NCBI RefSeq assembly: GCF_022045235.1
Contig: NW_027266267.1
Span: forward strand, 35,216,001-35,280,000
Length of the DNA: 64,000 nucleotides
From: Haliotis cracherodii
Lineage: Eukaryota
Direction of reading: 5' to 3'
Both the position numbers and the translations under genes were made by a program. The notes beneath the pieces were generated by a model. That model saw nothing but the letters and a program-made list of their open reading frames with translations, was not told where the DNA came from and made no database searches. Numbering within the stretch: position 1 is the first letter of the stretch; the number at the start of each line of letters is the position of its first letter. This document shows, piece by piece, positions 2,157 through 54,528 of the stretch.

Positions 2157-2191
2157 TTAGATTTCACTGTCGGCTTCGGACCGAGAATAAT
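2157..2191 (-). CDS. Gene A possible terminal exon (YYSRSEADSEI*)
   Basis: ttgcag acceptor, phase 1, compatible with the gtaagt donor after 2896. Alternatively the repeat exon reads through to the stop at 2870. Confidence 0.35.
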
Positions 2192-2201
2192 CTGCAACAA
2201 C

Positions 2202-2239
<38 letters not shown>

Positions 2240-5200
2240 AACATCAACATTGTCTTGCTGTCATAAATCCCTAAGGGGGCGGTAGCCCAGTGGTTAAAGC
2301 GTTCGCTCGTCACGCCGAAGACCCAGGTTCGATTCCCGACATGGGTACAATGTGTGAAGCCCATTTATGGTGTCCCCCGCCGTGATATTGCTGGAATATT
2401 GCTAAAAGCGGGGTAGAACCATACTCACTCACACACTCAGTCAGTCATAAATCCCTAAAAGGATGTGACATTTTGTATGTATGTTGTTTTGCGCCACAGT
2501 CAGTAATCGTCCTGATGACATCCTTTAATAGTCGAGTCCGGACCAGGCAAACCAACGGTTAATGTTATGAAAAACTTTCCACGTCGTTCGGCTATGATGA
2601 CACATTAACTACCAAGTTTGTTTTGTTTGTTTGTTGATTAACTGCACATCCAGAAATGTTCTAGCTTTGTGACTGAGGCCTGTAAATCATCGGGTTACTG
2701 ACATCATGAGCATCGATCTACGAAATGCGGATACTATGACATGCATGGACCATGCCACCGATTCTGAGCACCCGATGCCGTTATAATCAACCGAGACAAA
2801 TCACCCAACCCTTTCAGACCCTATTACGACGAACATATATAAGGAGACTCATTCTAACTCCTAGTCCGGTCAATCACACTTCCGTGGATACTTACATGTT
2901 CCGTTCTTTGTTTTCATTGACATATCTGGTACGGCATACAGATCATCAACGTTGACAGCACCGGCTACAGCTGACTGGTGTGTGGGTGTCTTGTCCGGGA
3001 CGACGTACATGTCACTATCGTTGACAGCACCACGTACAGCCGACTGGTGCTCTGGTGTTTTGTCTGGTACGGCATACAGATCGTCAACGTTGAGAGCACC
3101 ACGTACAGCTGACTGGTGCTTGGGTGTCTTGTCCGGGACGGCATACATGTCACCATCGTTGACAGCACCACGTACAGCCGACAGGTGCTTGGGTGTTTTG
3201 TCTGGTGCGGCATACAGATCGTCAACGTTGACAGCACCACGTACAGCCGACTGGTGCTTGGGTGCTTTGTCTGGTATAGCATACAGATCGTCAACGTTGA
3301 CAGCACCACGTACAGCCGACTGGTGCTTGGGTGTCTTGTCCGGGACGGCATACATGTCACCATCGTTGACAGCACCACGTACAGCCGACAGGTGCTTGGG
3401 TGATTTGTCTGGTACGGCATACAGAGCGTCAACGTTGACAGCACCAACTACAGCAGGCAGGTGTACGGTTGTCTTGTCTGGTACGGCAGTTAAATATAGA
3501 ATGATGGTGTTTATATTCCAACAACTAACAACATAATATTCTCCCGAAATTCTTCCCGAAATTATTAAGCTTGATCGAGAAGGCAACACTATAATCACAA
3601 CTCAAATACAATAGTCAGATATGTGAGGAAGTGAAGAACACCACAGCTGTGAAGACTTACTAGTTAAGAGCTCTTTGTTGTCAACAAGTTCAACTTGATT
3701 TCTGAAAAGGATTTTTGTTATAAATTATTGATCGTTTCAACACTGGAATAAATTATTGCAAATAATGATAACCATAACTACATAGAAACCTATACGTAAA
3801 TGTGATCTTAGCAAAGTGGCAGAAAACATTTTCATGAATAATGTTGGTTTATCACATTTGAGACGATACTATCGATCCCATAGCCCCAATCAGAGATACA
3901 CGTTCACACATTAGCTGAGGCGCTGTTTCACTTTCATAGCTTGGAGAGAACAAAATCACACACAATATTGTTTAGGCCAATATAATCTCCAGGAAAGCTC
4001 ATAACAAACTAAAGTTTAGTACATGTCTAGTATTCTATAATGTTTCGTGTTTCATTGTGAATATAACGCAAACTTGTCTGGACTAAATCGTTTGTGAATA
4101 AAGCTTTCCTATGATAAACGAAATCGTTCAACCAATATTACATGGTTAGGTGTTTGTATTACGCAGTGACTGGTTCCTGAATATAACGAATAATAACATT
4201 GTTAACAGTACGTTTTTGAGATGCAAATGAAACTAACAAAACCATTTCCATAACTGTAAGAAATCTGTACCGAAAGCAGAGTCCATTTTCCGTTCTGACT
4301 ATATCAAACACATGTGTTTATGAATCATACTCAATAAATAATGACACAAGGTTTAGATCGTATCCGTCACAATCCTATGCAAAGGCAAGAAAAGACATAC
4401 AGTTGAGCACATTGAAATAACATAACTCTATACGGAAGATGACCCATACGGGCTTTGCGTGATGGAATTCAAGGGTGACATACAGTGGAAGCACTTGACA
4501 CTCTACTCACGTAACATAAAGTGGGTTTTCTGAAAGCTCTGCACCATTGTCTACATCGCTGATAGCTGTGAACAGACATGACGACCAATACCTGTGTTCA
4601 CTGCATAATTTATTATATTTCTGTTGTTAATACTCTTGTGATATGTGTTGATGTATGCTCAAATAAGCGATTTTATGACAAGGATGGATAAGCAAATGAA
4701 TTGACAGATGCGAGCTGTAGCTTTTATGTTTGATGAAACTGTCATTTAATCTTTACATCTGAAATGTTTAACGTTGTCATAATTGTTCTGGTTTGATCTT
4801 CAAATCACTTTACATCAAATCGGAATCTGATACTTAATAATAGTAACATATTCCGACTGCAGAAGTGGAGTTTACCTTGCGTGACTTTTCTCGTTCTTCC
4901 CCTTCTAACAACACCTACACAGATAACGATTATGATGAGGATCATGATGCCACCTCCTGCCCCAGCAGCGATGTACATGGTGTCATCTTGAACATAAAAC
5001 ATATACTGGGTGTCTGGGCCATGGTTAGTGATGCTAATGACGTTCATGTTGATCTTTTAAAGATATGATACATATGGTGTTATCTTAAGGGGAAAACAAA
5101 TACTGGGCTAATATACTGTCCATGTATGAGTATATATACGTTCAGGCATGAGTCCGTGTACATAAACCATGAGTGTAAGTATTGAATGATCTGAGACAAT

Positions 5201-7205
5201 ATGAGCGAGAGGAGAGACCATGCTGCATACACGCAGATGCATTTGATGACCTGAATCTGTATGCTGTGACTATGAAGGATCTATGTCATGAAGTTCTTAA
5301 CTTGATGATGTTTCACCACAAATGATTTAGGTTGATTTGGGAAGTTCAATTTCGAAAGGGAACTGTTATATATATATATATATATTACAGATTCGAGTTA
5401 CCTGTTCTGTTTCAGTACTGTACACAAATCTAGGTTTTAAGCATGGTATGCAGAGATGGAGATTATATGTAATTACTAGATTCTAGAGTTGTCTGTATGT
5501 CCGTATCCGTTGACTGCGATGATGGCCGACTAGCACTGGTATCAAGTGGATCCAATTTGTCCCAATTACTCGAAGGTGTGAAACAGCACGTCGTTAGTAA
5601 TGGGTTAATGATCAATGTTTTTTTCCATGCTATTTGTCTTGATGTGAGAACATTATATCTTACTTTGTTGTTCATAATCGTTCAATTCACAGTAACTAAG
5701 CTAAGTCAATATCCTACTCGAACAAACTGCAGCGATATAATGTCGTGCAAAACCGCAATATCAAGAGCTATGATACACTGCATTAATGCCGTTCAATGCA
5801 CAAAGGTGGTATGTCTTGGATCATGGGTCCGTATACGGTTGTGTTATAAATTCCTGACTGTATCTAAATATCGTACACATCGTAGCTAAAGGTAAATATG
5901 ACGACTAGTACATTACTACCTTGATTATCGTTGCTCGAGGGAGTAGTTATCTTGATAGTTGTAAGTTTTGCCAACGTTGTTGCTGAATCAGTCAGTTGTG
6001 AACCTGTGTTATTGGTAGTCCCTGCCAAGCCTGCCGACATAAATAATAAAAAACAAAACATTATGAAATGTGCTAGCCCACCGCAGAGGACATATAATTA
6101 CACACTACTGTTGTTTGAAATATCTTCTAGATGAGCCAACATCAGTTATGCTCAGTGTAATTGTGAAACGACGTTCGAACATTTTATAAAAGTACAAACT
6201 AAAATGTGTGGATAGCTGGAGACATATTATATACAGAGGATGATTAAAACTATCTGACATTGTATCTGACCTACAATTGTTAAGATGATTTTACCAGCAT
6301 TAATGTGAATGGCATAACAGGTCTCATTGTTTCTCTAAATGTAATATACAAAACTACCTAGAGTACCTTGAATATCTGCATACACAAATAATATAAATTA
6401 ATTGTCGCATTTACCAGCTCAATATCGATGCTCTAGAAGAATCAATTTTATTTTATCGCCTCTGTGGTGAGATGGTTGGAGCGTCTGTCTGACACGATGT
6501 GCCATAACATGATGTGTGAGATAAAAAGGACATGTAGATGTAAATAAAGGAATATATCAGCGCATGGCAAAAAGGATCATACCTAAAGTAAGGTTGTTAC
6601 TGACTCTCTTGCGTTGATCCTCACACCGCCACACAGTGCCAGCATGGAGGTACTGAGTTGTCGTCAGTGTCATGTTGTGCTGGTAGTCACCACAGCTTAC
6701 ACTGACATCCGATGAAGTGTATAGGTCGTAACGATATGCATGAGTATCGCCTGGGCTGTTGGGATGGTGTTTTTGACAGACATTCCCTGCAAACACTGAC
6801 GTGAGAACTCGTACGTCATCCATGTACCAAAAGGTAAACTCTATGTCTATAGTGGTGTTAGCATCGGTGCAGACTAAGGTGACATCATCGTCTGACTGGA
6901 ACTGAGTGAGTTCTAGAAGAAGACCACCTGTAACATTCCAACATACAACCAGCATGAGAAGCATCCAGAACACAAACATGCAGTGACATTCTTTGTCGTT
7001 CTTCATGTACTTACAATGCCCCAATAGCCTTAACATGCAAACACAAAACAGATCTGATGTAAAGTGGTACAATCACTATCAAATTTCATCTACGACATTT
7101 CAATGGTTCTACCCTTCGCATGATTAGAAATTCAAACCTACTGTTATTTGTGTATGCAATCCATCCTATACACAGCAGAGAAATCAGGTGAATCCTTACG
7201 TCCAT
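2157..7205 (-). CDS. Gene A: single-Ig type-I transmembrane receptor with NPxY + 8x YxxP cytoplasmic tail (spliced model)
   Basis: Exons 7205-7142 (signal peptide), 6927-6583 (Ig), possible 6375-6358, 6030-5920 (stalk), 4986-4876 (TM), 4565-4511, 3701-3661, 3477-2896 and possible 2191-2157. All introns GT-AG with compatible phases and no internal stops. Confidence 0.8.
2275..2443 (+). mobile_element. tRNA-derived SINE, family 1 ((CTCA)n tail)
   Basis: A/B-box head (tagcccagtggttaa / ggttcgattcc). 15-bp TSD gtcataaatccctaa at 2260-2274 and 2444-2458. Confidence 0.9.
2896..3477 (-). CDS. Gene A cytoplasmic repeat exon: 8 x 69-bp (23-aa) units, each ending in Y-A/V-x-P-D
   Basis: Within ORF 2870-3598. 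Acceptor ccgtaccag, donor gtaagt. Example units: TPKHQSAVRGAVNVDDLYAVPDK and SPKHLSAVRGAVNDGDMYAVPDK. Confidence 0.85.
3661..3701 (-). CDS. Gene A cytoplasmic microexon (NQVELVDNKELLT)
   Basis: ttttcag acceptor and gtaagt donor; 41 nt, phase 2 to 1. A homologous 41-nt exon lies at 53923-53963 (+). Confidence 0.75.
4511..4565 (-). CDS. Gene A juxtamembrane exon with NPxY (AISDVDNGAELSENPLYVT)
   Basis: ttcacag acceptor and gtgagt donor; 55 nt. Homologous exon at 51937-51991 (+). Confidence 0.8.
4876..4986 (-). CDS. Gene A transmembrane exon
   Basis: DDTMYIAAGAGGGIMILIIIVICVGVVRRGRTRKVTQG: hydrophobic helix followed by basic stop-transfer residues. 111 nt, phase 1-1. Confidence 0.85.
5920..6030 (-). 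CDS. Gene A S/T-rich stalk exon
   Basis: GLAGTTNNTGSQLTDSATTLAKLTTIKITTPSSNDNQG; 111 nt, phase 1-1. Same length in B, C and E. Confidence 0.8.
6583..6927 (-). CDS. Gene A immunoglobulin (V-like) domain exon
   Basis: VTLVC...W(Y)...C...VSVSC...HNMTL...AGTVWRC...SNNLTL. 345 nt, phase 1-1. Confidence 0.85.
7142..7205 (-). CDS. Gene A signal-peptide exon (MDVRIHLISLLCIGWIAYTNN)
   Basis: ATG, hydrophobic core and phase-1 gtaggt donor. A homologous exon precedes all five Ig exons. Confidence 0.75.
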
Positions 7206-9393: not shown

Positions 9394-9578
9394 CTATGTT
9401 CTCATGGGTGGGTTTTCGTAGTCAGCCTTCTTGGATACAGTGTTGTAGTAAACATCGTTTGCGTGTATGCTGGGCTGTCTGGAAGCTTCTGTCTTGATCT
9501 CGGAGTAACAGGGATCTTTGTTACCGTTGTGAGCCAAAGTGCCGTAGTGAGGTGTATCAACCTCAGCCAGTGACACAT
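9394..9578 (-). CDS. Gene B terminal cytoplasmic exon, multi-Tyr
   Basis: DVSLAEVDTPHYGTLAHNGNKDPCYSEIKTEASRQPSIHANDVYYNTVSKKADYENPPMRT*; gtgtag acceptor. Confidence 0.8.
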
Positions 9579-12500
9579 CTACACAAACACAAATACAATT
9601 TAGAACTTAAGAATCAAGTATTGTGGCACCAATACTTGATATTTTACATATTTTACATTACACAGAGGGTCGCAAGCTGCATCAGTACATTTGATCTCTG
9701 ATACAAGGCCACAAGACATTAATGGTTGGTTTTTTTCTTTTGTATTGAGATATATGTTAGATATACTCAGTAGAAACTACTGTTAGCAATGGAACAAAAC
9801 ACTACGTTGTTGTTCGATTATAAAACAGTAAATTCACATCCAATCAGCACTGATCGTATACGTGGCTTTACAATCAGCTCCGGCTGTAAAACAAAATCGG
9901 CTTATGAATTGGAAACCAAAGGTAATTCTTTTTGTTAAAACTGGACGTGTGGTCCAGTCATCTAGGGCCCCGCAATTCGTTGTCCAATGTTGTGTCTCTT
10001 GGGCACGCTAAAAACCTACGAATACCGCCTCACATTAATACAACTTGAATAATGTGCAAAGCTGCATTGTACACAACTCACTCACTCACGCACTATAAAT
10101 AAAGCATTGGAACATGATGATCGAGCGAAGGACAACAATAGGAACTGACAACTGTAAATAAATGTAAACAAATATATGGAGAAAAGTTTAGAAAGAGTTC
10201 ACCTTGTGTAGCTTTTCCAATTCTTCTTTGCCTCCTCACAAAACACAAACAGAGAACACTTATGATGAAGATCACGACGCCACCTCCCGCCATAACCATG
10301 ATGATTATGGCGTTTTTATTACCTTGAAAAAGAAAAATATGAAAACTAATGCTGGGCTACATGTATGAGTTGTATTGTGCATAGAGGTTGTTGGTATAAG
10401 TATTGAATAATCTAATAAAAGCAAACACATTGATAAGCAGCGAAACCAGTCTTTGTAGGATGTATGCTGATGCTGTTATGGAGCTATTATATGATGTTAT
10501 TTACAGTATACTGTTTCACAAACACCATAAATGGTTTTGGTTATTTCGGAAGCTTTTGAATGGGAGACTGGTATCGCTTTCATATATCAAAGATACGCAC
10601 AACCTGTTCTTTTGCCAAAATGAAGTGTCCTGCAGAGCATGAAGACAGGAGGTATACATAAAAGAACGTGTCTCATAAACTATATTTTACAAATGTTTGT
10701 TCCTCATCAGTCAACGACTGCCATGAAAACCGACTAATATTGGAGTCTGGTGGATTCGGTTTATAATCGTTACCCGAACAAGTATTGTTCTGGGGACACC
10801 AAAAATGGGCTTTACACCTTGTTCAGAACGTCGTTAGTAATGGGTGTCTGTTCCATGATTTATTATTTAGCAGTGACATATTTGTGGAGGTCTTGTATAG
10901 TGTAATATTACATACTTCCATACAGCAGGGTTGACCTGTTATAAATTCTGCAATATCAAGAGCCATAACATACTAAAATATATCACCATGATGTCTGTTT
11001 GAATAAATGCTGGGCCGGTGGGGTAGCTGAGCGGTTAAAGCGGTCGCTCGTCACGCCAAAGAACAGGGTCCGATTTCCCACTTGGGTACATTGTGTGAAA
11101 CCCATTTCTGGTGTCCCCAACCGTGATATTACTGCAACATGTCTAAAAGCAACGTAAAACAATAGTCACTCACTCACTCAAATAAACAAGGCTCAATGCA
11201 TATTGATATTATGTATTAGATCATGTGTCTGTAAAAGAGATTATTGAAAGACCATAATTGTCCTACTGATGTATTACTTCCTAATCCTTTTGATCTCCCG
11301 TTTAGAAAATTGCACTGAGCAGGATCGCAGTTTCAGAAAATCACAAATGTCGAGTGGCGTGAACAATCTTCATCTATGGCGTTGTTTCCAGTGTGACGCT
11401 ATTCCGACCTTAAGCATCAAAAGGATTCAAATGACTTCAACAATGCCATCAGAATGACGGAAACAATGTCTTTTGCACTAGTACACATACATTTTTCATG
11501 AACTCGGTCTTTTCTAACCCTATGGGTAATCATAGTTGTAACATATATAAAACTAAAATACATTGTACTGCCAAACCTTTAGCTTAATACGTATACAAGT
11601 ACATGCCTTATGTCGGCAAAAGTTTAAATATGATAACTGGTGTGAATACAAAGTCACTCTAAATATAATATGCACTGTATGCAAACGTTAGTTTAGTTAG
11701 TTGGTGCACAACTACCATGAATAGCTATGTCTGAAGTGGTCGTTGTTGCTGATGCAATCAGTGGTCGAGTTGACTCATACGCAGTCCCTAGAATGTCTGC
11801 AGACACAAATAATTTATATTAATTGTGACATGTACTGGCTCAATATCTAACACACAATAACTCAAATGAATAATCTATTGTATTTGTGGTCTAATGGCAG
11901 GGGGACTGCCCGGAGAGAAGAAGGTCGGATGTTCGATGTCCGGCCGTGTCATTCTAACAAAAATGTGAAAAGATGGTACCTGTTATTTCCCTGCCCGGTC
12001 CACTGAGTCAAGGGAATAAAACAAGGACTTGTTGCTTCGGAGCGTAATGAGTCTGAGTGGGGTAATCATGTTAAAGTAGTGCATGGTATCTCAGTGGGCT
12101 AGCACTATGAAACCTGCATTAGTNNNNNNNNNNNNNNNNNNNNNNNNNNNNNNNNNNNNNNNNNNNNNNNNNNNNNNNNNNNNNNNNNNNNNNNNNNNNN
12201 NNNNNNNNNNNNNNNNNNNNNNNNNNNNNNNNNNNNNNNNNNNNNNNNNNNNNNNNNNNNNNNNNNNNNNNNNNNNNNNNNNNNNNNTATAAGTGCAATA
12301 ATCTTGAACGCAACGATAAATTCCATTTCAGATCACATCTTAAAGTATTGATGTATCTTTGTACCGTGATGTATTTATTGATCATGGATAACGAATGAGT
12401 TACATCTGCATTGATACATGTACAGTGTGTCACAACATGCTGCGTGAGATTAAAAGAACATGAAAGTGTAAATAAATGAATATATGCGCACGAAATGAAA

Positions 12501-14037
12501 CAGATAGGTCATACCTTAAGTAAGGTTGTTACTGACTCTCTTTCCATGCTATTTGTCTTGATGTGAGAACATTATATATTTTACTTTGTTGTTCATAATC
12601 GTTCATTTATTCACAGTAACTAAGCTAAGTCAGTATCCTATTCGAGCAAACTGCAGCCATAAAATATCGTGTGAAAAACGCAATATCAAGTGCGCAATAT
12701 TAGTGTCATACATTCCTGACTGTTTCTAAATATCATATACATCGTAGCCAAATGTTAGTATGACGACCAGTACACTACCGTGATTATCGTTCCTCGGGGC
12801 AGTAGTTATCTTGATAGTTGTAAGTTTTGACAAGGTTGTTGCTGCTTCGGTCAGTTGTGAAGTTGCCTTTATGTTAGTCCCTGCGAAGCCTGCCGACATA
12901 AATGATACAGAAATAATCATGAGGGAACAGAATTACACACGACTATAGTTTGAATAATCTTCTAGGTGAGCCAACATCAGTTATGCTTAGTGTGTTTTTT
13001 AAAATGACGTTCGAACATTTTACATATAGAGTTACTAACTAAAATGTGTGGATAGCTAGAGACACATAGTATACAGGGGATCATTAAAACTATCAAGTAT
13101 TGTATTTGAACTATTATTGTTCCACCAGCATTAATGTGAATGGCATAACTGGTAAAACTCAATACAATGTTTCTCTTAATATAATATGCATCGTTAGTTT
13201 AACAGACACACAACTACCTTTTGAATGGCCGCAGACATAAATAATAAATAATATAAATATATTATGGCATTTACAATCTCAATATCGATACGTCTCTGTG
13301 GTCAGATAGTTAAAGCATCTGTCTGACACGATGTGTCATAACATGATGTGTGAGATCAAAAGGAGACGTTGATTTAAAAAAAGGGAATATGAGTGCATGA
13401 CAAAAAGATCATACCTAAAGCAAGGTTGTTGCTTACTCTCTTGCGTTGATCCTCACATCGCCACACAGTCCCAGCTTGGAGGTATTGAGTTGTCGTTAGA
13501 GTCATGTTGTGTTGGGTGTAACCACAGCTTACACTGACATCCGTTGAAGTGTATAGGTCATAACCATATGTATAAGTATCGCCTGAGCTTTTTGGTGGGT
13601 TCTTTGCACACGTTGTCCCCACAAACACTGACGTGAGAACTCGTACGTCATCCATGTACCATTTTGTAAACTCTATGTTGATAGTGGTGTCAGTTGCGGT
13701 GCAGACTAAGGTGACATCATCGCCTGACTTGAACTGAGTGAGTTCCAGAGGGAGACCACCTGCAACATTCCAACATACAACCAGCATGAGTAGCATCCAG
13801 AACACAAACATGCAGTGACATTCTTTGTCGTTCTTCATGTACTTATAATGCCCGAATAGCTTTAACATGCAAACACAAAACAGATCGGATATATAGTGCT
13901 ACAATCACTATCAAATTTCACCTACGACATTTCAATGGTTCTACCCTTCGCATGATAAGAAATTCAAACCTACTGTTATTTGTGTATGCAATCCATCCTA
14001 TACACAGCATAGTAATCAGGTGAATCCTAATGTCCAT
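9394..14037 (-). CDS. Gene B: single-Ig type-I receptor with ITAM-like/ITIM-like tail (model crosses gap 12124-12287)
   Basis: Exons 14037-13974 (SP), 13759-13415 (Ig), 12889-12779 and 11796-11716 (stalks), 10322-10203 (TM), probable microexon 9883-9838, terminal 9578-9394. The cytoplasmic microexon phases are not fully resolved. Confidence 0.7.
10203..10322 (-). CDS. Gene B transmembrane exon
   Basis: NKNAIIIMVMAGGGVVIFIISVLCLCFVRRQRRIGKATQG; 120 nt, phase 1-1. Confidence 0.85.
11012..11180 (+). mobile_element. SINE family 1, diverged copy
   Basis: Homologous to 2275-2443. A duplicate sits at the equivalent position at 18041. Confidence 0.8.
11716..11796 (-). CDS. Gene B second stalk exon (ILGTAYESTRPLIASATTTTSDIAIHG)
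   Basis: 81 nt, phase 1-1. Homolog at 49866-49946 (+). Confidence 0.65.
11885..12340 (+). mobile_element. SINE family 3 spanning the assembly gap
   Basis: Homologous to 52847-53205 on both sides of the N-run. Confidence 0.7.
12124..12287. other. Assembly gap (N-run)
   Basis: Run of N bases. Confidence 1.
12779..12889 (-). CDS. Gene B stalk exon
   Basis: GFAGTNIKATSQLTEAATTLSKLTTIKITTAPRNDNHG; 111 nt. Confidence 0.8.
13415..13759 (-). CDS. Gene B Ig domain exon
   Basis: 345 nt, phase 1-1, paralog of 6583-6927. Confidence 0.85.
13974..14037 (-). CDS. Gene B signal-peptide exon (MDIRIHLITMLCIGWIAYTNN)
   Basis: 64 nt with a phase-1 donor. Confidence 0.75.
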
Positions 14038-32279: not shown

Positions 32280-32384
32280 CTTGTGTACTGCCTTCAGGAA
32301 TCTGCGTTGATGTTAACGGTAATTGTTGAACAGTCGATGGCCTTGATGGTAGAGTTTTGTCTGTGCGACTGGTCTCAGGAAAGT
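32280..32384 (-). CDS. Gene D stalk exon, copy 4
   Basis: DFPETSRTDKTLPSRPSTVQQLPLTSTQIPEGSTQG; catcaag acceptor and gtaaga donor. Confidence 0.7.
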
Positions 32385-42005: not shown

Positions 42006-42072
42006 ATGGGCAGTGAGATTCCTCTGAGGTTCCTACTGAGTATAGGAATGATTGTGTATGTACATTCGTCTG
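42006..42072 (+). CDS. Gene E signal-peptide exon (MGSEIPLRFLLSIGMIVYVHSS)
   Basis: Inverted paralog of 39372-39438. Confidence 0.85.
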
Positions 42073-43204: not shown

Positions 43205-43236
<32 letters not shown>

Positions 43237-46200
43237 CCACACCATTCCTCGTTCCCGTTTTATATTGCCTCCCTTATAACACCTTGACACCTCAAAACCA
43301 AAATGGAGTTTTTGATATATTGCCAGTGCTGACCTTATTTCTTATTTTTTTTCAAAAAGCAATGTTCGCTCTGTACAAATAATTTCCTCAGAAATGATTG
43401 AACAGGGTGGTCGGGGATATGACGTCAGTTAAGGCCATACTCGGTGATAAGTCGGTAGTGACTGGGATGGAGGGGGATATGCTGTCAGTGAAGAAATGCT
43501 TGCAGTGATCTGAGTGGTGGGGATTATCGTTAGTGATCAGAATGCATTTAAGTAGTAGTGTCGGTAGTGTTTGGGATTGAGATTATTATGTTGTTTTGGA
43601 TGAAGATGCTGGGGATTATATCGGTGATGATTGGGGTAGTGGGAAATATGCTGGTAGTTATTGGTATGCTGGGGCATATACCCGTTGTGGTCGAGATGCT
43701 AGGGGATATATCTTCAGATTAATTGATGTCGGTGGTGATCGAGACGCTGGGGATATGTCTTTAGTGATCCAGGTGCTGGAGTATACTAGTATATCGGTAG
43801 CGATTAAGATGCTGGGGATATGTTGGTAGTGATCAGGATGCTCGGGTATTTTGGTAGTGATCGGGGTGTTTATAGATATACCGATAGTTATCGAGATGCT
43901 GGGGGATAAGCTGGTAGGGATGGTAGTGATAGGTGATATGTTTTTAGTGATACAATTGCTGGGGATATGTTGTTATGGATTTAAATGCTGGGGAATGTCA
44001 GTTGAGACATGGGTGCTCAGGGGAGAAGGGGGGGGGGATGCTAGATGCTTGGTGTTATTGTGGTACTTATTGAGATGCTCGGGGATACATTTGTAGGAAT
44101 ACGGATGCTGGGTGATATGTCAGGTAGCGATCACGACGATAGGTGATATGTCTGAGGTGATTGTGATGCTGGTGGATATGCGGGTTATGAAAGAGATCCT
44201 GGGGATATGTAGTTTGTAAAGGAGGTCCTCGGAATCTGTCTGTTTTGAGTGGAATTGTTGGGATATGCCGGTAGTGATCATTATGCTAAGGGATGTAATA
44301 GTAGTGAATTGGATGATGGGGATATACATGTACATGTATGTCGGAATGCTTGTTCGCGCCAATGATCAGGCCTAAATTTGCTCAGGAGGCTCGAATCAAA
44401 TTACCAATTTTGCCGCCATATTATTAGTTTTAACAATGTCATCTCAGAAAGTGTCAGATTCCACGTCCTAAAAATCATGAATACAACTCTAGCATGTGGC
44501 GTTGCTAAGTCAAAAGGTTGCTTCTCTTTATGCATGTAATGCAAATATTTCTGAATGTTCGGAAATGTGATTCTCAGATGATATTACATGTGGGTGTTTT
44601 TAATAGATCTAAATATTTTGTCAAATATTTTGAGTGAGTGAGTGAGTGAGTTGGGTTTAACGCCGCTCTTAACAGTATTCCAGGTATATCACGGCGTGTC
44701 AGCTTAATGTGGGAGGAAAGCCCGAAGTGATGCAGGTCTCAGACGTTTACCACTTCGGTGAAACCCACGAGCATGGGTATGGTGCTGACAAACATAGAAA
44801 CATAATCTGGGCGAACCGGGATTCGAACCCACAATCCTAGGTTTTTTGCGTGCCCAAGGGACGCAACTCTGCACATCGAATCGCGGCGCCTTAGACGACT
44901 TGGCCACCCGTGACCCCAACAACTATTTTGAACGTGTATAGCATTATAAGGAGGCGTGTAAGACTCAGAGTTGAAACTGAGTATAATATTTGATTTTACA
45001 TATTTTATGGAGGATTAGGAACCACTGATGCAATAGAATGGATTGTTTCAGAGTTAATGTATGAAGAAAATAGTTGAAATCCAGTGCTCATAGTATATTT
45101 ATTATGACTATGTTGGCACTTTTGTGACTGTAGAGCTACAGTACCATGACACTTGTCGCATTGGCATCTCACCCTGTGATATACATGTACATGTTTTCTA
45201 AAATCATTATACTTCAAGTGAACAATTACTCTGCAGGACATGGGTTTCGATGTTAAGATCGGTATGCAGGTTTGGGCTAAGTAACATATTCTTGAAAATG
45301 CTCTTAGGGGTAATTGTATTTGATTCAAATTCGTCACATTCTATGAAGTTTAACTAACAGGCAAATATGTTTACAGACGTCCTGCTATCTTAAGATCATT
45401 TTCCTCATCGGATGATGGTGATTGATTTAATTAAATGAATACATATCCAGAGTAAAACTTTTGGGAAACAAATAAAATATATAGTGCATAATGAGAAGTT
45501 CTTAAGGTTTAACTGAAGGAACGTTACTTGTAGTGTGTTGTGACAATGTTAAGCAATATTATGTTTATTTATTATTTCGTGAAATGTCCTTACAGGCTTT
45601 ATAGCTGTATAGCTAACTGTCCAAACGTCACTAGTCTCCTCAATATCTATGCAGAAACTATTTAAATTCCAATGCTGACGGCAACTTTCTGAGGACACCA
45701 GGACCTACAGTTTTTAGGTCCTTACTGTCAGAACCACTGTATGTATTCCGAAAAACATTACCACAAGTAACAGTGTTTTAATTATATAATTGGTACATCA
45801 AGACTTTCCTGAGACCAGTCGCACAGACCAAACTCTACCATCAAGGCCATCGACTGTTCAACAATTACCGTTAAAATCAACGCAGATTCTTGAAGGCAGT
45901 ACACAAGGTAAGACAAAGTTCATTTCTTGTTGTGGAAATGTGTTGGCCAACTGAATACATTATGGGTATATCTTTGGGTCTTCTAGTTCAAACATTACTC
46001 AATCCTATTAATCATGTACTGTAGGTAAACAGTAGACCTTATGTGCTATTCGTGAGATCTTCAGATTAATTAATGTCGGTAGTGATTAGGATGCTGGGGT
46101 ATATGCCAGTATTGGTCGTGATCCCATGACGCTCGGGGATAGGCCCATAGTGATCGAGACGCTGAGAGATATGTCTTTAGTGATCCAGAAGTTGTAGGAT

Positions 46201-49200
46201 GTATCTGTAGGAATAGGGATGCTTTGGCTTATGATGTTGTTGACAGTGATCCCGCTCGGAGACACGCCCATAGTAAGTTAGAAGCTGAGTAATATGCTGG
46301 TCGTCACTGAGACTGATATGCTTTTAGTGATTGATATTGTGGGGGATATGTTGGTAGTGATCAAAATGTTCGGGTTATGTTGGTATTGATCGGGATGCAT
46401 ATATCGGAATAGGCTGGTAGGCATTGAGGTGACTGGCGATACGTTGTCAGTGGTGAAAATGCTTGGGAATATATCGATAGTGATCAAGATGTTGTGGTAT
46501 ATGTCGGTGCTAATTTGAATACGTGGGGATACTGTGGTACGTATTGAGATGCTAGGGGATTCATTTGTAGGAATACTGATACTGGGTGATATGTCAGGTA
46601 ATGATCACGACGATGGGTGATACGTCTGAAGTGATTATGATACTGGAGGATATGCGGGCTGTCAAAGAGATCCTGGAGATCTGTCGGTTGTGAAGGTGAT
46701 CCTGGAAATGTGTCGGTTGTGAAGGTGATCCTGGAAATGTGTCGGTTGTGAAGGTGATCCTGGAATTGTGTCGGTTGTGAAGGTGATCCTGGAAATGTGT
46801 CGGTTGTGAAGATGATCCTGGAAATGTGTCGATTGTGAAGGTGATCCTGGAAATGTGTCGGTTGTGAAGGTGATCCTGGAAATGTGTCGGTTGTGAAGGT
46901 GATCCTGGGGATATGTCTGTTTTGAATGGAATACTTGGGATATGCCGGTAGTGATCATAATGCCAAGGGGTGTTCCAACAGTGAAATGGATGATTAGGGT
47001 TTATGCGGGAATGATCGGAATGCTTGTTTTCACTAACGATCAGGCCTCAAGACGTTCGAATCAGATTACCAATTTTGCTGCTATGGGATTATTTTTAACA
47101 ACATTTTATTCAGAAAGTGTCTTTAAGCTTGCAATGCAAACATTTGTTTATGTTCTGAAACTTGATTCGAAGATGTGATATTGTATGTGGGTGTTTATCA
47201 AAACTTTATTTTGTAAAATACTTTGAAAACGTATGGCATTATAAAGAAGCATGTAAGACCTAAAGTTGAAACTCGAATATTATTTCATTTCACATGTTTT
47301 ATAGTGGATTATATTTATATGCATTGTAAAAACATTGTAAGTCAAGTGAACAATTACTTTGCAAGACATGCATTTCGATGTTAGGATTGATATGCATGTT
47401 TGGGTTAAGAAAAATATACTTCCAAATCCTCTTGGAGGTAATGGAATTAGATTCAAATTCATCACATTCTAGGATGTTTTATTAAAATGCAAATATGCTG
47501 ATAGACGTCATGCCCTCTTAACATCGTGTTCTTAGATAATCTAACATTCAATATCGTGGTCAGTTCATATTTGTGTCTACGTATATATTACCAATAGTTA
47601 TAGACCATCATCATTATAGTCAAAATCTCCACACAAAACGGTACTATATTTTTAAAAGTCATATCTTCTCTTCATAGTATTATGTTTTGTAAAATACTAA
47701 AATACTTTATATGTTGTTGTTTCTGTCACCATGATGGATGATGGTGATGGATTTAATGAAAATACTCAATATGAATGCATATTTCCATTTCAATGCCGTC
47801 AGCAACGTTCTGATGTCCTTATGAAATGCAGTTACTGTCAGAACCATTGTACTTATTGTGAAGACAAGTAACATTTGCATCTTCAAGTAACACCCTGTTA
47901 TGGATCCAAATAATTCATTGATGTTAATGTTAATTCCATGCCGGTGTCCAATATGCAATGATAATAATGATAATGTGTGGATAAAGGAGTTTGGACAAGC
48001 ACGAATATCTCGACTCTGGTATGAACAAGCAAACGCTAACTATAGAGGGGGAACTCTCTGGCAATTTGGAATCCATTGCCTGTATTTCTGGAACGTTATA
48101 TCCTGGCCTAAATACAAAGAGATTTTTTTGGATCGGGTTGTAAGGGTCAGTGATGGTTGATTACAGCATCGTTTTTCTGTATATGGGCATTACCCTTTCG
48201 AAGCGTCGATTTTGCACTGAAACGCGTCGAAATTGATTTTGGAATAAAACTGGGCTAGGGTAACGTGACACGTTAACCTTGGACGAGACACTGAATGTGT
48301 CCATTTCTACAGACGAACACAGCAATTATTTAAAATATATCACTTTGGTACACTTGTACGATTTTATTTTGTATTTATTTTTGTCAATAACTGGTGACAT
48401 TGTCTCTACTTTGTCGTTGCCACATTCATTCATTTTCACTACTAGTTTTAAACATTTCTCTGTGATAAATCTAGTTATTTTACTGCCCATCGTTGGCAGG
48501 TTTTTATACGTTTTCAAAGTATTTCTGATATTTAACCTTTGATAGTCACGATATGGCTGAAATATTGCCGATGTGACTTAAAACTTAACTCACTCACTCA
48601 CTCACTCATTCATTTTCACAATCTGACTGTTGACAACGTGTTGTCATTTCATTCACTCGCCACAGTCGCATTCTCTTCATATAAGCATGTAGTACGTCAC
48701 ATACATATATAGGACTGAGCAAAGATTGTAAGTTTTATATCTCTATATAGTAGCATGAACGGTGATAACTCCTGGCAGGCAGTCCTGGAAGGCAACTAGC
48801 ATCGGGGAGATCTGGTTTAGCCAAGTCAGAAATTCCATACAGTGCAAAACAAGAGCATGCAATTGTTTGCTTTTTGGGGTTCAGATTCACTCCCCAGTCA
48901 TAAAGCGTCTTGATCGGCTAATATTGACACGACAGTACTGTTACTCGAGAGCAACTATTATAGTATGCACTGGTATTGAATTTTTGGATATTGATTATTT
49001 CCTGGCCAAATATTCATTCTTATTGATTACCCACCCATGTTGGTATATTGTAAAACACATTGGCTGACACTGCCGCTAAAAGAAGTTGACACTCGTTTTA
49101 ACTTCTCTTTTTTAAGCAGGTTATGCTATATTTCTACTCACTCACTCAGACATACTTCGTGTTGTGAAAAAACCGATGTCAATTCCTTGAAATGTTAAAC

Positions 49201-51196
49201 CATCATTCAATAGTGTATAGGTGAATGGTAAAATATCAAAAGTTGACATCAGTGGAAGGTAAAATTTTAACAGTTGACTTCAGTGAAATATTAAATATTA
49301 TCAATTGACATCAGTGGAAGGTTGAATATCAAAAGTTGACTTCAGTGAAAGATTCAATATTAATAGTCGACTTTAATGAAAGTTTAGATATTACTAGTTG
49401 ACTTCAGTCAAAGGTTAAATTTTAATAGTCGACTTTAGTGAAAGGTTAGATATTAATAGTTGACTTCAGTGGAAGGTTAAATATTAATAGTCGACTTTAG
49501 TGAAAGGTTAGATATCAATAGTTGACTTCAGTGAAAGGTTAAATATTAATAGTCGACTTTAGTGAAAGGTTAGATATTAATAGTTGACTTCAGTGAAAGG
49601 TTAAATATTAATAATCGACTTTAGTAAAAGGTTAGATATTAAAAGTTGACATCAGTGGAAGGTTAAATATCAAAAGTTGACTTTACGGGTATGTGTGTTA
49701 CGGACTTCTTATTTTAGTTCGTAATAACCGTAGTTCGTTATAAGTATATGTACAGCATATTTACAACAAATGGTCGGGACTAAAAATATGTTTGTTATAT
49801 CGGTCAGTTCGTTATAAGCGTGTTCGTTAAAAACATAGATTACTGTATATGATTTTTGTATGCAGACATTTCAGAGGCTACTGAAGAGTCAACTACACCA
49901 CTGACTGATTCAGCAACAACGATCACTACAGACAGCGATACTCATGGTAGTTTTGTATCAGGTAAACATACGATGTATATTATATGTAGAGAAACATTTA
50001 TTCATACTAGTTATGTCATTCACATTTATGACGACGAAAGCCATTTTAATAACCACACGTCGGATACAATATTTAAAGTTTGTATTATCTTTTGTATATT
50101 ATATGTCTCCAGCTACCCACAGTTTAGTTAATAACTCGATCTGTATGCAAATGTCCCAACGTACGCTCAAAACACCCAAACATACAGTAATGTGTTATGT
50201 TATGTCCTCTGAGGTGGGCTATTTGGTTTTTTTTATTATTTGTCAGCAGGTTTTCCAGGGACTGGCTATAAGACAAGTTCACAACTGATTGATTCAACAA
50301 CAACGTTGGCAAAACTAACATCTATCAAGATAACTACTGCCCCGGAAATCGATAACAAAGGTACATGTACCCGTCGTCAACTAACCTATGGGTACGATGT
50401 GTATGATGTTTAGAAATATGCATGAATGTATAACAAAACCATATACTGACGCAGGATCCACGACGGACCACCAATGTGCATTGAACGCCATTTATCTGAA
50501 CAGAGAGTATTGTGATATTCTATATCACAGCAGGCCCGTGACGATTCCGGGGCAGAGTAGGTCTTCAGCAACCCATGCTTGCCGTAAAAGGCGACTACGC
50601 TTGTCATAAGAGGCGACTAACGGGATCTGGTGGTCAGGCTCGCTGACTTGGTTGATGCATGTCATCAGTCCTAATTGCATGGATTGATGCTCATGATATC
50701 AATCACTGGATTGTCTGGTCCAGACTCGATTATTTACAGACCGCCGTCATATAGCTGGAATATTGCTGAGTGCAACGTTAAACATCAAACCAACCAACCA
50801 ACCAACCATATCACAGCTCCAGATATTACGTTTTTTTGCACGGTATTTCTATTGCTGCAGTTTGTTCGAATGCAGATACTGACTTAGCTAAGTCACTGTG
50901 AGTGAATAACGATTATGAATAACAAAGCAAGTCATATTGTAGTAACACCACAAGTAGCATGGCAAAAATAGCATGGACCATACACCCATTACTAACGACG
51001 TGCTCCTTCACGTCATCGGGTGTAGAGGACAAATTGGATCCATTGGATTTCAATGTTAGTCGGCCATCATGGCTATCATAGGCTACTGATATACAGACAC
51101 ATCTTGTATGTAGTAGTTACATACAATATGCATCTCTGCTTACCATGCCCAAAACCTAGTGCTTTTACATTACTACAAACGATCAGGCTACTCGTA

Positions 51197-51260
<64 letters not shown>

Positions 51261-54200
51261 GATCACTTTTCCCTTTCGAAAACAAAACATCCCAATCAAA
51301 AACAACCTAAATTATTTATGGTGAAACATTATCAAATAAATTACTTCATATCATAGCTCCATAATAGTCTCTTCATACAGACGGACGCCTCCAACTTCAT
51401 CTGCGTGTACAGCATGGTTCCTCTTCATATGACGCTTATGTTGTCTTAGAATATTGAACACTTACACTCAATGGGTATATACATGGTCTCATACTAATAT
51501 AAACTCATACATGTGCCAATTTCACGAAGCGAATTTGTTTTCTTTTCAAGATGAAGCCATATACATCTCGGTCGGGGCGGTAGTTTGCGTCGTGCTCTTT
51601 ATTATAATCGTTATCTGTGTATGTGTTGTGAGGAAGAGAAGAATGGGAGTAGTAACAGAAGGTAAACTACGTCTTTTATGACGGTTGGAACATATAGCAG
51701 TTATTTGCCATCATATTCTAATTTGAACTTGATCATTCATGTCAACGTTAAGCAGTACAAATATAATGATTAAATGTCAGTTTCATAAACGTAATAATCG
51801 ACAGCTCTTTATTTCAGCTTTTAATAAAAAAAAGTATTTGAATATACATCCACAACCATCAACCAAAGCATTAAAAATAGAAATATTATAAATAATGCAG
51901 TGAACAAATTGAAATGATCGTCATGTATGTTCACAGCTCACAGCGATGCAGACAATGGTGCAGAGCTAACAGCAGCCCCAACCAATGCTACGTGAGTAAA
52001 ATGTTAATTACTTCCATATTCCCGTATGAGTCGCCAAAGATATATCGATTATCTCATATCGTTCAATAACGATCAAATAGCCAATTCGCTTCCACTTATT
52101 TACCCACCTAACCCGAAATAAAGGAGATTTATTTAGATCTATGCAGAAAGTTTCAGAGTGACAAAACACTTTCCACAACTTTCTAATAGTCCACTGTTCT
52201 TTTATGTAGAGCAATATTCCTACAGCTCCAGCTCTTGGTGTCTATATTGCACAACTTTTGAGGTACAATCGAGCATGCCCTTTCTGCCAAGAATTCAAGG
52301 AGCGTCATACACCTCTTGCTCAGAAGCTGTTTGATCAAGGTTACAACATTCAAAGAAACATTCAAGGCCAAAGTTTTCAAAACGTTTATGGTAGACATGT
52401 TGAGGACAAAACTGACGCAGCAGTGACAAAATTGATGTTCGATCCAATTCCCTATTTGGACTTGTACCATATGGTCCCGTGTTCTTTTCAGGTGATCAAT
52501 TGACTTGTCTTTGTGCGTGTTTATGACGGGTATCGCCGATGGGACTAGTAACACTCAACTTTTCACAAACACCTGGCCGTGGTCTTCTCACTATTTGATA
52601 GTGATTGATAAACACATAATCATGATACAGTCGGAATCGAACAATCGACTGTGCTTAAGGCGGAGGTTTCTTATGAATATGGAGTAGGAATTAATTGATT
52701 GTTATCACTATATAACTATCCACGGAGATGGTTGACCTTGTCGCCTTCAATTGAAATGTTTATATTTACAGAATTAAAATTCACATCGACGGACGCATCA
52801 ACAGCCCTGATCACAGGTAATTCACTTGAATCCTTAATAACTTCAAGACCGCCTCCGGGGTCTAATGGTAGAGCGTCCGCCCGGACAGCGGAAGGTCCGG
52901 GATTCGATCTCCGGGCGCGTCCTACCAAAATACGTTAAAAGATAGTACTTGTTGTTGCCCTGTCTGGCGCTCGGCATGAAGGGGCTAAAACAAGGACTGG
53001 TTGGCTCGCATTCAGTATACTGTTTCTGAGTGGGGTATTCATGTTAAACTGCGGCATGGTATCTCAGTGAGCTAGCACTATAAATCGGCATCAGTCCGGA
53101 CTAGTACAAGCAGCCACACAAACAGACACACGAACATGCACGTCGCTATAGAAGCGCAATAATCTTGGACGCGACGTTAAACCCCATTTCACCTCACCTC
53201 ACCTGAAAACTTCTAAATTTGTTTTTATAATGCAGCTGCTTGAAAAAAAGCGCACATTGTGTATCCTCAAGTGGTTGAACTCGACCTTTTATAAGTTCTA
53301 ACATATTTTCAAATTTGTATTGTATTAATAAGTATGATTGTTTGATTACATGTTGTTGAAGGACGATGGGCTATAAATAGACACACTTGTTCTTGATATT
53401 ACAGGCAACGCCCAACACCTATTCGGATACGATGACACAAGTCACCCATCAATAATATCCCCTTAAATGTGAACTTTCTTAACTTGTTTGTTTGTTGTTA
53501 AACGCCGCCCTCAGCAACATTCCAGCTATATGACGGCGGTCTGTAAAATAATCGAGCCTGGATCAGACAATCCAGTGATTGGCATCATGATCATCGATCC
53601 ACCCAATTGGGATCGATGACATGTATCAGCGAGCGTGACCACCCGATCCCGTTAGTCGCCTCTTACGACAAGCATAATCGCTTTTTACGGGAAGCAGGGG
53701 TTGCTGAAGATCTATTCTACCCCGGAATCGTCACGGGTCTTAAAAGTGAACAAAACCCATTGTTCATGTAAATGTTACGGACTTATTCCTGCCACTTTGC
53801 GAATGTGTAAAGATCACATTTTCGTATAGGTTTCTATGTAATTTTGGCTATTATTATTTGCAATTATTTATTCCAGAGTTGAAACATGCAATAACTTTAA
53901 AATGAATTATATTCCTTTTCAGAAACCAAGTTCAACCTGGTGACAAGAAAGAGCACTTAACTAGTAAGTCTTCACAGTTGTGGTGTTCTTCACTTCCTCA
54001 CACATATGACTATTGTATTTGAGTTGTGATTATAGATAAAGCGTTGCCTTCTCGATGAACCTTAATAATTTCAGAAAGAATATCTAGGGAAAATAATATG
54101 TTGTTACTTGTTGGAATATAAACACCATGATTCTATATTTAACTGCCGTATCAGACAAGACACCCGAACACCTGCCTGCTCTTGACAGTGCTGTCGACGT

Positions 54201-54528
54201 TGGCGATCTGTTTGCCGTACCAGACAAGACACCCGAACACCTGCCTGCTCTTGACGGTGCTGTCGACGATGGCGATCTGTTTGCCGTACCAGACAAGACA
54301 CCCGAACACCTGCCTGCTCTTGACGGTGCTGTCGACGTTGGCGATCTGTTTGCCGTACCAGACAAGATACCCGAAAACCTGCCTGCTCTTGACAGTGCTG
54401 TCGACGTTGGCGATCTGTTTGCCGTACCAGACAAGACACCCAAACACCTGCCTGCTCTTGACGGTGCTGTCGACGTTGGCGATCTGTTTGCCGTAAACAG
54501 AACCTTACCGTCGTCTCATTTTATATGA
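42006..54528 (+). CDS. Gene E: single-Ig type-I receptor with a tyrosine-free A-type tail (candidate decoy)
   Basis: Exons 42006-42072, 42337-42696, 45803-45907, 49866-49946, 50250-50360, 51551-51661, 51937-51991, possible 52772-52816, 53923-53963 and 54155-54528. GT-AG, phase compatible, open. Confidence 0.75.
42337..42696 (+). CDS. Gene E Ig domain exon
   Basis: 360 nt, phase 1-1, close paralog of the D Ig exon. Confidence 0.85.
43400..44300. repeat. Degenerate ~30-bp minisatellite (inverted homolog of 36985-37700)
   Basis: gatgctgggg(g)atat..gtagtgatc motif. Confidence 0.75.
44632..44918 (-). mobile_element. SINE family 4
   Basis: Homologous to 23225-23494; TSD tattttga. Confidence 0.85.
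45803..45907 (+). CDS. Gene E stalk exon (D-type, single copy)
   Basis: DFPETSRTDQTLPSRPSTVQQLPLKSTQILEGSTQG; 105 nt. Confidence 0.75.
46665..46910. repeat. 29-bp minisatellite, ~8 copies
   Basis: Unit tgaaggtgatcctggaaatgtgtcggttg. Confidence 0.9.
49230..49683. repeat. 31-bp minisatellite with alternating 62-bp higher-order structure
   Basis: aatagttgacttcagtgaaaggttaaatatt alternating with aatagtcgactttagtgaaaggttagatatt. Confidence 0.9.
49866..49946 (+). CDS. Gene E stalk exon (ISEATEESTTPLTDSATTITTDSDTHG)
   Basis: 81 nt; an alternative in-phase donor follows 49961. Confidence 0.7.
50250..50360 (+). CDS. Gene E stalk exon (A-type)
   Basis: FPGTGYKTSSQLIDSTTTLAKLTSIKITTAPEIDNKG; 111 nt. 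Confidence 0.75.
50533..50808 (+). mobile_element. SINE-like family 2, full length
   Basis: (ACCA)n tail; flanking atatcacag duplication. Confidence 0.85.
51202..51256. repeat. (TA)n microsatellite
   Basis: Directly visible. A shorter homologous tract lies in the gene A intron at ~5367-5384. Confidence 0.95.
51551..51661 (+). CDS. Gene E transmembrane exon
   Basis: DEAIYISVGAVVCVVLFIIIVICVCVVRKRRMGVVTEG; 111 nt. Confidence 0.85.
51937..51991 (+). CDS. Gene E juxtamembrane exon lacking NPxY (AHSDADNGAELTAAPTNAT)
   Basis: 55 nt with the same splice sites as A 4511-4565. Confidence 0.8.
52100..52430 (+). mobile_element. Penelope-like retroelement RT C-terminal fragment
   Basis: SNIPTAPALGVYIAQLLRYNRAC...FKERH...QKLFDQGY...YGRH, typical of this region in Penelope-like elements. 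Confidence 0.7.
52847..53205 (+). mobile_element. SINE family 3 (tRNA head + V-domain-like core), best-preserved copy
   Basis: A/B boxes; core accaaaatacgttaaaagatagtacttgttgttgccctgtctggcgctcggcat; (CACCT)n tail. Confidence 0.85.
53484..53740 (-). mobile_element. SINE-like family 2
   Basis: Homology to 50533-50808. Confidence 0.85.
53923..53963 (+). CDS. Gene E cytoplasmic microexon (NQVQPGDKKEHLT)
   Basis: 41 nt, homolog of 3661-3701. Confidence 0.75.
54155..54528 (+). CDS. Gene E terminal repeat exon: 5 x 69-bp units with FAV(P) instead of YAVP
   Basis: TPEHLPALDGAVDVGDLFAVPDK repeats. The upstream intron is homologous to that of gene A. Confidence 0.8.

Follow-up and report, generated by a model that had tools for sequence, protein, structure and literature searches.

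The paired receptors of vertebrates (KIR, LILR, PIR, SIRP, CD300 and CEACAM) are encoded by tandem clusters of type-I membrane proteins, in which related immunoglobulin (Ig) ectodomains are joined to different cytoplasmic tails. The activating members among them combine a short tail with a charged residue in the transmembrane (TM) segment, which pairs with an adaptor that carries an ITAM (immunoreceptor tyrosine-based activation motif). Here we analysed a stretch of 64,000 nucleotides from the black abalone, Haliotis cracherodii (assembly GCF_022045235.1, contig NW_027266267.1, positions 35,216,001 to 35,280,000; hereafter the window), in which a preliminary description, made from the letters alone, had proposed a cluster of such receptors in what it correctly took to be a mollusc-like genome. 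The genes in question, named A to E, each join one Ig domain to a stalk, a TM segment and one of several tails. The reading that we favour, with a probability of about 0.6, is that the window is part of a Haliotis-specific tandem family of type-I receptors, the tails of which would act as tyrosine-signalling outputs and the ectodomains of which may serve in recognition.

The abalone genes share with the vertebrate clusters their tandem type-I arrangement, their related ectodomains and their diverse tails, as well as birth and death of genes, exon shuffling, motifs resembling the ITIM (immunoreceptor tyrosine-based inhibitory motif), pseudogenes, and truncated or tail-less members. They differ in that the abalone proteins have one V-set domain only, carry an ITAM-like motif in cis and have uncharged TM segments with no sign of adaptor pairing. 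One abalone tail class, which combines NPxY with an array of YxxP motifs, is without counterpart among the vertebrate receptors. Those receptors are expressed on immune cells and have opposing outputs; the likeness of the abalone genes to them is one of gene layout. A profile search of 1.84 billion representative proteins revealed no homology to KIR, LILR, SIRP, CD300 or the Alr receptors of Hydractinia beyond the generic Ig fold.

Alr is described as a lineage-specific cluster of Ig-like receptors with ITAM-like and ITIM-like tail motifs (10.1101/2022.03.04.482883). Like the abalone locus, it is an invertebrate cluster whose V-set-like domains are hard to detect with sequence profiles, and it has ITAM/ITIM-like tails; no homology to the abalone genes was detected. 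Abalone are solitary, and we know of no allorecognition phenotype in them. In oysters, CgIgR, which has five Ig domains and an ITAM, recruits CgSyk (PMC6994640), and oyster Ig receptors are reported to signal in haemocytes via Syk or SHIP2 (PMC6994640; PMC11841013; review PMC11999971). CgIgR/CgIgIT2 and CgNCAM1 are likewise type-I Ig receptors of a mollusc, with a cytoplasmic ITAM or ITIM, but each is encoded by a single gene and has three to five Ig domains, and clustered swapping of heads and tails has not been described in their case. Nor are they homologous to the abalone family, because no mollusc outside Haliotis was among the matches of the profile search. Full-text literature searches gave no description of the abalone family, and a 2025 review of invertebrate Ig-superfamily proteins does not mention abalone.

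Gene models, domains and tails

The list of open reading frames (ORFs) in the window contains five long frames with a common Ig-like sequence, and tblastn identified five paralogous Ig exons there (E 1e-20 to 1e-117). All five genes could be modelled completely, with AG and GT at every exon border and no stop codon in any frame, as checked by script on the coding strand. The spliced models were translated solely for this frame check; single exons or database proteins served as search queries.

Ig-like long ORFs in the ORF listing: about 6.9, 13.7 and 20.1 kb, minus strand; 38.7 kb, minus strand; 42.5 kb, plus strand
Gene A: 2870..7205, minus strand, 444 residues; from splice sites, open frame, motifs and tandem array
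Exons of A, minus strand: 7205-7142, signal peptide; 6927-6583, Ig, 345 nt; 6030-5920, stalk, 111 nt; 4986-4876, TM, 111 nt; 4565-4511, 55 nt, with NPLY; 3701-3661, 41 nt; 3477-2870, last exon, with eight 23-residue D[LM]YAVPDK repeats
Gene B: 9394..14037, minus strand, 301 residues in the model built here; from splice sites, open frame, paralogue alignment and motifs
Exons of B, minus strand: 14037-13974; 13759-13415, Ig; 12889-12779, 111 nt; 11796-11716, 81 nt; 10322-10203, TM, 120 nt; 9578-9394, tail with YGTL-x9-YSEI, VYYNTV and YENP
Gene C: 16440..20462, minus strand, 272 residues; from splice sites, open frame and motifs
Exons of C, minus strand: 20462-20405; 20173-19829, Ig; 19013-18903, 111 nt; 17351-17232, TM, 120 nt; 16624-16440, tail with YDTL-x9-YSEI, VYYNTV and YENP
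Gene D: 26221..39438, minus strand; from splice sites, open frame and the H. rufescens orthologue XP_048254005/6
Exons of D, minus strand: 39438-39372, signal peptide; 38832-38476, Ig, 357 nt; 36389-36285, 35054-34950, 33719-33615 and 32384-32280, 105-nt stalk exons; 26911-26891, 21-nt cassette; 26594-26221, stalk, TM and 59-residue motif-free tail
Gene E: 42006..54528, plus strand; from splice sites, open frame, RefSeq XP_071095272 and a 69-bp array
Exons of E, plus strand: 42006-42072, signal peptide; 42337-42696, Ig, 360 nt; 45803-45907, 105 nt; 49866-49946, 81 nt; 50250-50360, 111 nt; 51551-51661, TM, 111 nt; 51937-51991, 55 nt, NPxY lost; 52772-52816, optional 45 nt, in RefSeq only; 53923-53963, 41 nt; 54155-54528, five 23-residue repeats with F for Y

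From A to E the exon order is the same: signal peptide, Ig domain, stalk rich in serine and threonine, TM segment and cytoplasmic tail. The leader exon of each gene begins with ATG, encodes a hydrophobic segment, measures 58-67 nt and ends in phase 1, which is also the phase of every ectodomain and TM intron. The Ig exon has 345 nt in A, B and C, 357 nt in D and 360 nt in E. Exons of 81, 111, 105 and 21 nt serve as stalk modules, and stalk length varies between genes; the 105-nt exon, for example, has four copies in D and a single one in E. A and E have a TM exon of 111 nt, B and C one of 120 nt, and the exons of 55 and 41 nt in A and E are cytoplasmic. These models recovered all the conserved exon lengths given earlier (345-360, 111, 81, 105, 55 and 41 nt) and confirmed the phase-1 ectodomain introns; as a small correction, the TM exon has 111/120 nt and not 105 nt. 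At the position of the 81-nt stalk exon, gene A has an 18-nt open phase-1 remnant between AG and GT (6375-6358, minus strand), either a micro-exon or a dead relic, and in C this exon is wholly gone.

Modelling of the Ig exon with AlphaFold2 gave a confident all-beta structure (pLDDT 82.6, pTM 0.78). In the Foldseek comparison of this model, a check that had been proposed at the outset, all of the top 50 matches in the PDB were V domains. An independent structural search against representatives with VIA-align returned antibody VH, chicken CD8alpha and TCR Vbeta at Z 10-11.2, with an rmsd of about 3 A over 97 of 114 residues. Across the Ig alignment, which comprised 22 family exons of this genome, Trp33 is invariant and the conservation of Cys19 and Cys101 is 90% or higher; none of the three varies among A to E, and a second, extra pair of cysteines is also conserved. 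The predicted structure indicates that the family ectodomain is a V-set Ig domain overlooked by profile libraries. The Ig exons of A to C had no Ig match in Pfam scans. Sub-threshold Pfam matches of the exons and RefSeq proteins to SCAMP, gerPA, HGAL and TMEM154 were rejected as noise or motif-level similarity.

The tails fall into at least four classes in the family. That of A contains NPLY followed by eight 23-residue repeats, each with D[LM]Y[AV][VIA]P (YxxP), which are encoded by an in-frame 69-bp tandem array (8.2 copies, 82% match). B and C have a 60-residue tail in common that reads YxTL, nine residues, YSEI, VYYNTV and DYENP. The element VYYNTV, a motif-level match to the ITIM [SILV]xYxx[ILV] and to YxN, is invariant across the ITAM-type tails, and the 9-residue spacer (YDTL-AHNGNTDPC-YSEI) is found in B, C, three upstream genes (G3-G5, described below) and relatives from H. 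rufescens and H. rubra. D ends in a basic, motif-free tail of 59 residues with one juxtamembrane tyrosine. The tail of E has an A-type body without any tyrosine: NPLY has become APTN, and its five repeats, encoded by a 69-bp array of 5.1 copies (96% match), read DLFAVPDK or, at the truncated end, DLFAV, with FAVP where A has YAVP. The tail types set out in the preliminary description, a YxxP array in A, ITAM/ITIM-like motifs in B and C, a tyrosine-free tail in E and possibly a short tail in D, are all borne out. No charged residue was seen in the TM translations of A to E (that of D is fully hydrophobic), and none of the five is a short-tailed member with a charged TM segment.

It is general knowledge that p130Cas, CED-1, Draper, MEGF10 and LRP1 have YxxP arrays for Crk/Nck docking or NPxY for PTB docking, and the A-type tail resembles them in this respect. 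Unlike p130Cas, the abalone proteins carry the array directly on the receptor tail, encoded by an in-frame 69-bp minisatellite, the copy number of which ranges from 3 to 8 among paralogues. Pfam scans gave no p130Cas homology for the YxxP tails; multiple YxxP motifs are present in A and in the upstream genes G1, G2 and G6.

Extent and mosaic history of the cluster

The cluster extends about 64 kb upstream of the window, where we found six more intact genes and three broken heads.

G1-G6 (L031-L039): C4:35151800-35209200 (C4 is the window's contig), minus strand, upstream DNA with all exon types mapped

Tails of the NPxY/YxxP type, with two to three intact YxxP repeats each, occur in G1, G2 and G6, and ITAM-like tails in G3, G4 and G5. 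The broken heads contain stop codons and adjoin G1, G2 and G3 on the upstream side. G3 to G5 have two TM-like exons each. The local cluster comprises at least 11 genes, six of them upstream of the window. The five models with signal peptide, Ig, stalk and TM in the window stand as intact genes; the label of a five-gene cluster does not stand.

Within the window, self-comparison showed a tandem unit of about 6.9 kb for each of A, B and C. They are 70-80% identical to one another by tblastn (78-79% between the Ig domains of A and B/C), D and E are about 85% identical, and the two groups are 45-46% identical by alignment. Self-comparison also showed that the body of A (2.9-6.35 kb) is homologous to that of E (50.0-54.5 kb). 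Because the D and E heads, and the A and E bodies, are homologous, E is a D-type head on an A-type body. Three features record such rearrangements.

Inverted duplication behind the D and E heads: D side 31819-39543, E side 41902-47525; 84-95% identity, self-blastn
Scar in B: 12515..12542, minus strand; terminal ~28 nt of an Ig exon, followed by its downstream intron; 12542-12426 matches A 6610-6498, where the Ig exon of A ends at 6583
Scar in C: 18754..18822, minus strand; 5' part of an Ig exon (acceptor plus first ~47 nt) joined to the donor end of a lost 81-nt stalk exon, out of frame if spliced; from tblastn, sequence reading and B/C homology boundaries

The scar in B marks the joint of an A-like head (signal peptide, Ig and 111-nt exons) to a G3-like body (81-nt, TM and ITAM-like tail exons). 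Related ectodomains with different tails lie side by side, as in paired receptors, at A and B/C and at D and E (about 85%), and G1 to G6 are mixed. Correspondingly, each of three Ig clades is associated with two tail types (A versus B/C; G1/G2/G6 versus G3-G5; D versus E). In a maximum-likelihood tree of 11 Ig exons, grouping the ITAM-type genes into a single clade cost 63 log-likelihood units and was rejected (approximately unbiased (AU) test, p=0.0006). On this phylogeny, heads and tails have recombined more than once; unequal crossing-over, inverted duplication and exon shuffling have put the same kind of head on different tails. The AU test and the scars in B and C uphold the earlier proposal of interchangeable tails on related ectodomains.

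The stalk of D has also been expanded. Its four 105-nt exons lie in a 1335-bp tandem repeat (31819-36996) of about 3.9 units that are 95-98% identical, with one exon each, and this exon amplification is therefore very recent. The exon is single-copy in E (45803-45907), and the mRNA model of the D orthologue in H. rufescens uses two.

Errors of assembly, through collapsed or duplicated haplotypes or misjoins at two gaps, could mimic a cluster of this kind.

N gap of 164 Ns: 12124-12287, in the B intron between the 111-nt and 81-nt stalk exons
N gap: 24362-24674, between the D stop (26221) and the C start (20462), outside any model

Both gaps lie within the finding, and the region is rich in minisatellites and short interspersed elements (SINEs). 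However, the flanks of the gap in B (12539-12393 and 12113-12008), together with the region of its 81-nt exon (11854-11693), are collinear with the G3 intron from the Ig exon to the 81-nt exon, and G4 has the same order. The span over the gap is 280 nt including Ns, compared with 266 nt in G3. The flanks being collinear with a paralogous intron, this gap lies within an intron and interrupts no reading frame, and the second falls between genes; both are harmless to the models. The copies differ by 8-30% in DNA, far beyond allelic divergence, and several distinct family members are also present in H. rufescens and H. rubra. An assembly artefact is therefore very improbable.

Distribution, annotation and selection

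In this genome, a profile of the five window Ig exons picked out 60 or more related ones. Most lie on the window's contig, in clusters at about 7.2, 8.8, 27.3, 29.4 and 33.6-34.1 Mb, and some on contig C18. Against the representative proteins, the profile gave 44 matches at E<=0.001. All of the checked matches at E<1e-12 were from Haliotis (H. cracherodii, H. rufescens, H. rubra and H. asinina), and were RefSeq proteins that are labelled 'uncharacterized' or spuriously named; further matches were weak, generic Ig similarities to fish and CD22-like proteins (E 5e-12 to 5e-4). More distant Haliotis members have one or two such Ig domains and other tyrosine-rich tails (YMxL, DYNPSLL and DLYAxP repeats). 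These matches support a multigene family restricted to Haliotis; in place of one-to-one orthology to a conserved single-copy gene, which would have spoken against the earlier interpretation, we found a lineage-restricted multigene family.

Existing annotation covers this family in part. RefSeq models B and E as 'uncharacterized protein' and, upstream, G6 plus partial or joined models of other genes. One of these (P0050) joins the leader and stalk of G2 to the TM exon of G3, about 17 kb away. In H. rufescens, one protein (P0001) ends by reading into the intron past the 81-nt exon. This protein, P0050 and the RefSeq model of B (P0053) are either soluble isoforms without a TM segment or annotation errors. 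The proteins XP_048254005/6 of H. rufescens (P0045/P0002) combine a D-type Ig exon, two 105-nt exons and the last exon of D; these two isoforms differ by exactly the 21-nt cassette. All the models named here are products of annotation. The possibility that the last exon of D is a separate gene was rejected, as the H. rufescens isoforms join a D-type Ig exon to it. A paralogue of this last exon, 68% identical and with conserved upstream blocks, lies 12 Mb away (C4:22796835-22797149; L043, L047), and the profile found no family Ig exon near it. A search with the Ig exon for short, possibly transcript-derived fragments returned just three genome-annotation proteins. The cluster had been called hidden, which fits A, C and D, for which the searches gave no protein of this species, and not B and E, which RefSeq already contains.

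Selection on the Ig exons differs with the age of the copies. Between A, B and C, dS is 0.28-0.35 and dN/dS 0.26-0.43; at this substantial dS, the low ratio therefore implies purifying selection over substantial time. Among the younger G copies, dN/dS of the Ig exon is 0.5-2.1. In a sliding window, residues 58-66 alone exceed 1 (pN/pS 2.2, from a small sample and without a significance test); they form a low-confidence loop of the model between strand E49-53 and helix 63-70. In the ITAM-like tail, the five local copies (B, C and G3-G5) and the relatives from H. rufescens and H. rubra all keep the same five tyrosines, while the residues between them vary (pN/pS 0.27-0.45).

Several observations weigh against our favoured reading of a family of signalling receptors. 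The RefSeq model of B (224 residues) joins the signal peptide, Ig and 81-nt exons to the tail, leaving out the 111-nt exon and that for the TM segment, and that of E (XP_071095272, P0006) runs from the middle of the Ig exon to the stop, with the extra 45-nt exon and without the 5' end. Searches of the protein collections gave none from H. cracherodii for A, C or D, and no transcript-derived protein of the family, all entries coming from NCBI/UniRef genome annotation. No Ig exon reached the gathering score of a Pfam Ig profile, the best being PF00047 with 17.5 against 21.8 bits, in D only. The tail pair lies outside the strict definition of an ITAM, YxxL/I-x(6-8)-YxxL/I, in which the spacer is x6-8; its 9-residue spacer fits the relaxed x6-12 only, and scans to E 10 listed no match to an ITAM-family Pfam entry. 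The tail motifs are short, and signalling roles read from them would be correspondingly provisional. The description of the cluster as rapidly evolving is supported by the dN/dS of the youngest copies, although whole-exon values near 1 are expected under relaxed constraint too. The open frame of E may be young, as it runs through a 96% homogeneous repeat array that possibly has had no time to break.

Some of these points would also suit birth-and-death debris, in which most copies in the window would be young, unexpressed or decaying and a few functional members would lie elsewhere. The three broken heads with stop codons (including L012 and L013), the Ig scars within B and C, the loss of every tyrosine and of NPxY in E, dN/dS of about 1 or higher among G2-G6, the lack of RefSeq proteins for A, C and D in this species and the RefSeq model that runs from the G2 head into the G3 tail are all in keeping with it. 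By contrast, A, B and C at their level of dS and constraint keep all 5-7 exons and all splice sites, the tail tyrosines have stayed invariant, and D has an orthologue of the same architecture in H. rufescens. We consider it improbable that most copies in the window are debris. The genes of the cluster are a real, modular and lineage-specific family of single-V type-I membrane proteins with a mosaic history.

Dispersed and tandem repeats are frequent between and within the genes.

tRNA-derived SINE copies, 80-94% identity: 2281-2451, 11008-11180, 18037-18205, 22743-22895, 27014-27188, 41187-41367, 41496-41663
Second dispersed repeat, about 260 bp, whose translation includes ...SWNIAECGVKQQT...: 19306-19573, 21857-22084, 50532-50794, 53485-53741, 56784-56987, 57693-57858; in introns and intergenic DNA of the cluster

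ARAGORN called no tRNA gene, so the tRNA-like elements are SINEs. Two of the copies form an inverted pair between the heads of D and E, near the axis of the inverted duplication. The large second introns of D and E are filled with G-rich degenerate minisatellites (36996-37700 and 43400-44300), which give rise to a strong, mirrored GC skew. Others, of 44, 29 and 31/62 bp, are located nearby at 31130-31797, 46669-46926 and 49221-49685.

Possible outputs and significance

NPxY is a docking site for PTB domains and YxxP arrays for Crk/Nck-type SH2 domains, ITAM pairs recruit Syk-type kinases, and VxYxxV/YxN motifs bind SHP or Grb2-type partners. If the abalone proteins are signalling receptors, as we favour, ligand binding by the V domain would cluster the receptor and Src-type kinases would phosphorylate the tail. 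A-type tails, with NPxY and 3-8 YxxP motifs, would dock PTB and Crk/Nck-type SH2 adaptors and elicit cytoskeletal responses such as engulfment or adhesion. Tails of the B/C type (YxxL-x9-YxxI, VxYxxV/YxN and YENP) would draw in a Syk-type kinase, along with partners of the SHP or Grb2 type. D, which is motif-free, and E, which has lost its tyrosines, would bind ligand without tyrosine signalling, as sinks or decoys; alternatively, E may be decaying. The likeliest setting would be haemocytes or epithelia that recognise microbes or altered self.

The tail motifs are what suggests a function in immunity or non-self recognition. A real and expressed family could instead mediate non-immune recognition or adhesion between cells, in epithelia, the nervous system, larval settlement or gamete interaction, with the motifs coupling adhesion to the cytoskeleton. 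Arrays of YxxP with NPxY are typical of adhesion and engulfment scaffolds (from general knowledge, p130Cas, CED-1/Draper and LRP1), the TM segments are uncharged, and we found no immune-specific feature and nothing that ties the genes to haemocytes. The raised pN/pS in the loop at residues 58-66 would suit any arms race, including sexual conflict, and gamete interaction is the classic arena of fast evolution in abalone. However, single-V multigene clusters that mix ITAM-like and ITIM-like tails are mostly immune or allorecognition systems where they have been studied (for example 10.1101/2022.03.04.482883), and oyster ITAM/ITIM Ig receptors are reported to act in haemocytes (PMC6994640; PMC11841013). 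We regard a purely non-immune role as rather unlikely. The architecture and evolution set out in the preliminary description are supported, and its functional part may hold to the extent that motifs predict function.

A more far-reaching version, which is possible and which we put forward tentatively, is that abalone evolved an independent system resembling the leukocyte receptor complex: an extensive chromosomal array of single-V receptors with exon-shuffled outputs, namely a minisatellite-tuned Crk/PTB engulfment tail, a Syk/SHP ITAM-ITIM tail, a tail-less sink and a phospho-dead decoy. If true, it would be the first paired-receptor complex described in Lophotrochozoa. If the genes are expressed, the paired-receptor design, with one recognition domain, several outputs and fast birth and death, would have arisen independently in a mollusc. 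Its tail modules are unlike those of vertebrates and include an NPxY and YxxP array set by a minisatellite, an ITAM-like motif in cis and a natural mutant in which every tyrosine has become phenylalanine. The family is invisible to Pfam-based annotation, so other invertebrate genomes may contain more families of this kind than have been counted. If expressed, these genes would also be concrete, testable candidates for the means by which haemocytes or epithelia of abalone tell targets apart, which bears on disease in the endangered black abalone.

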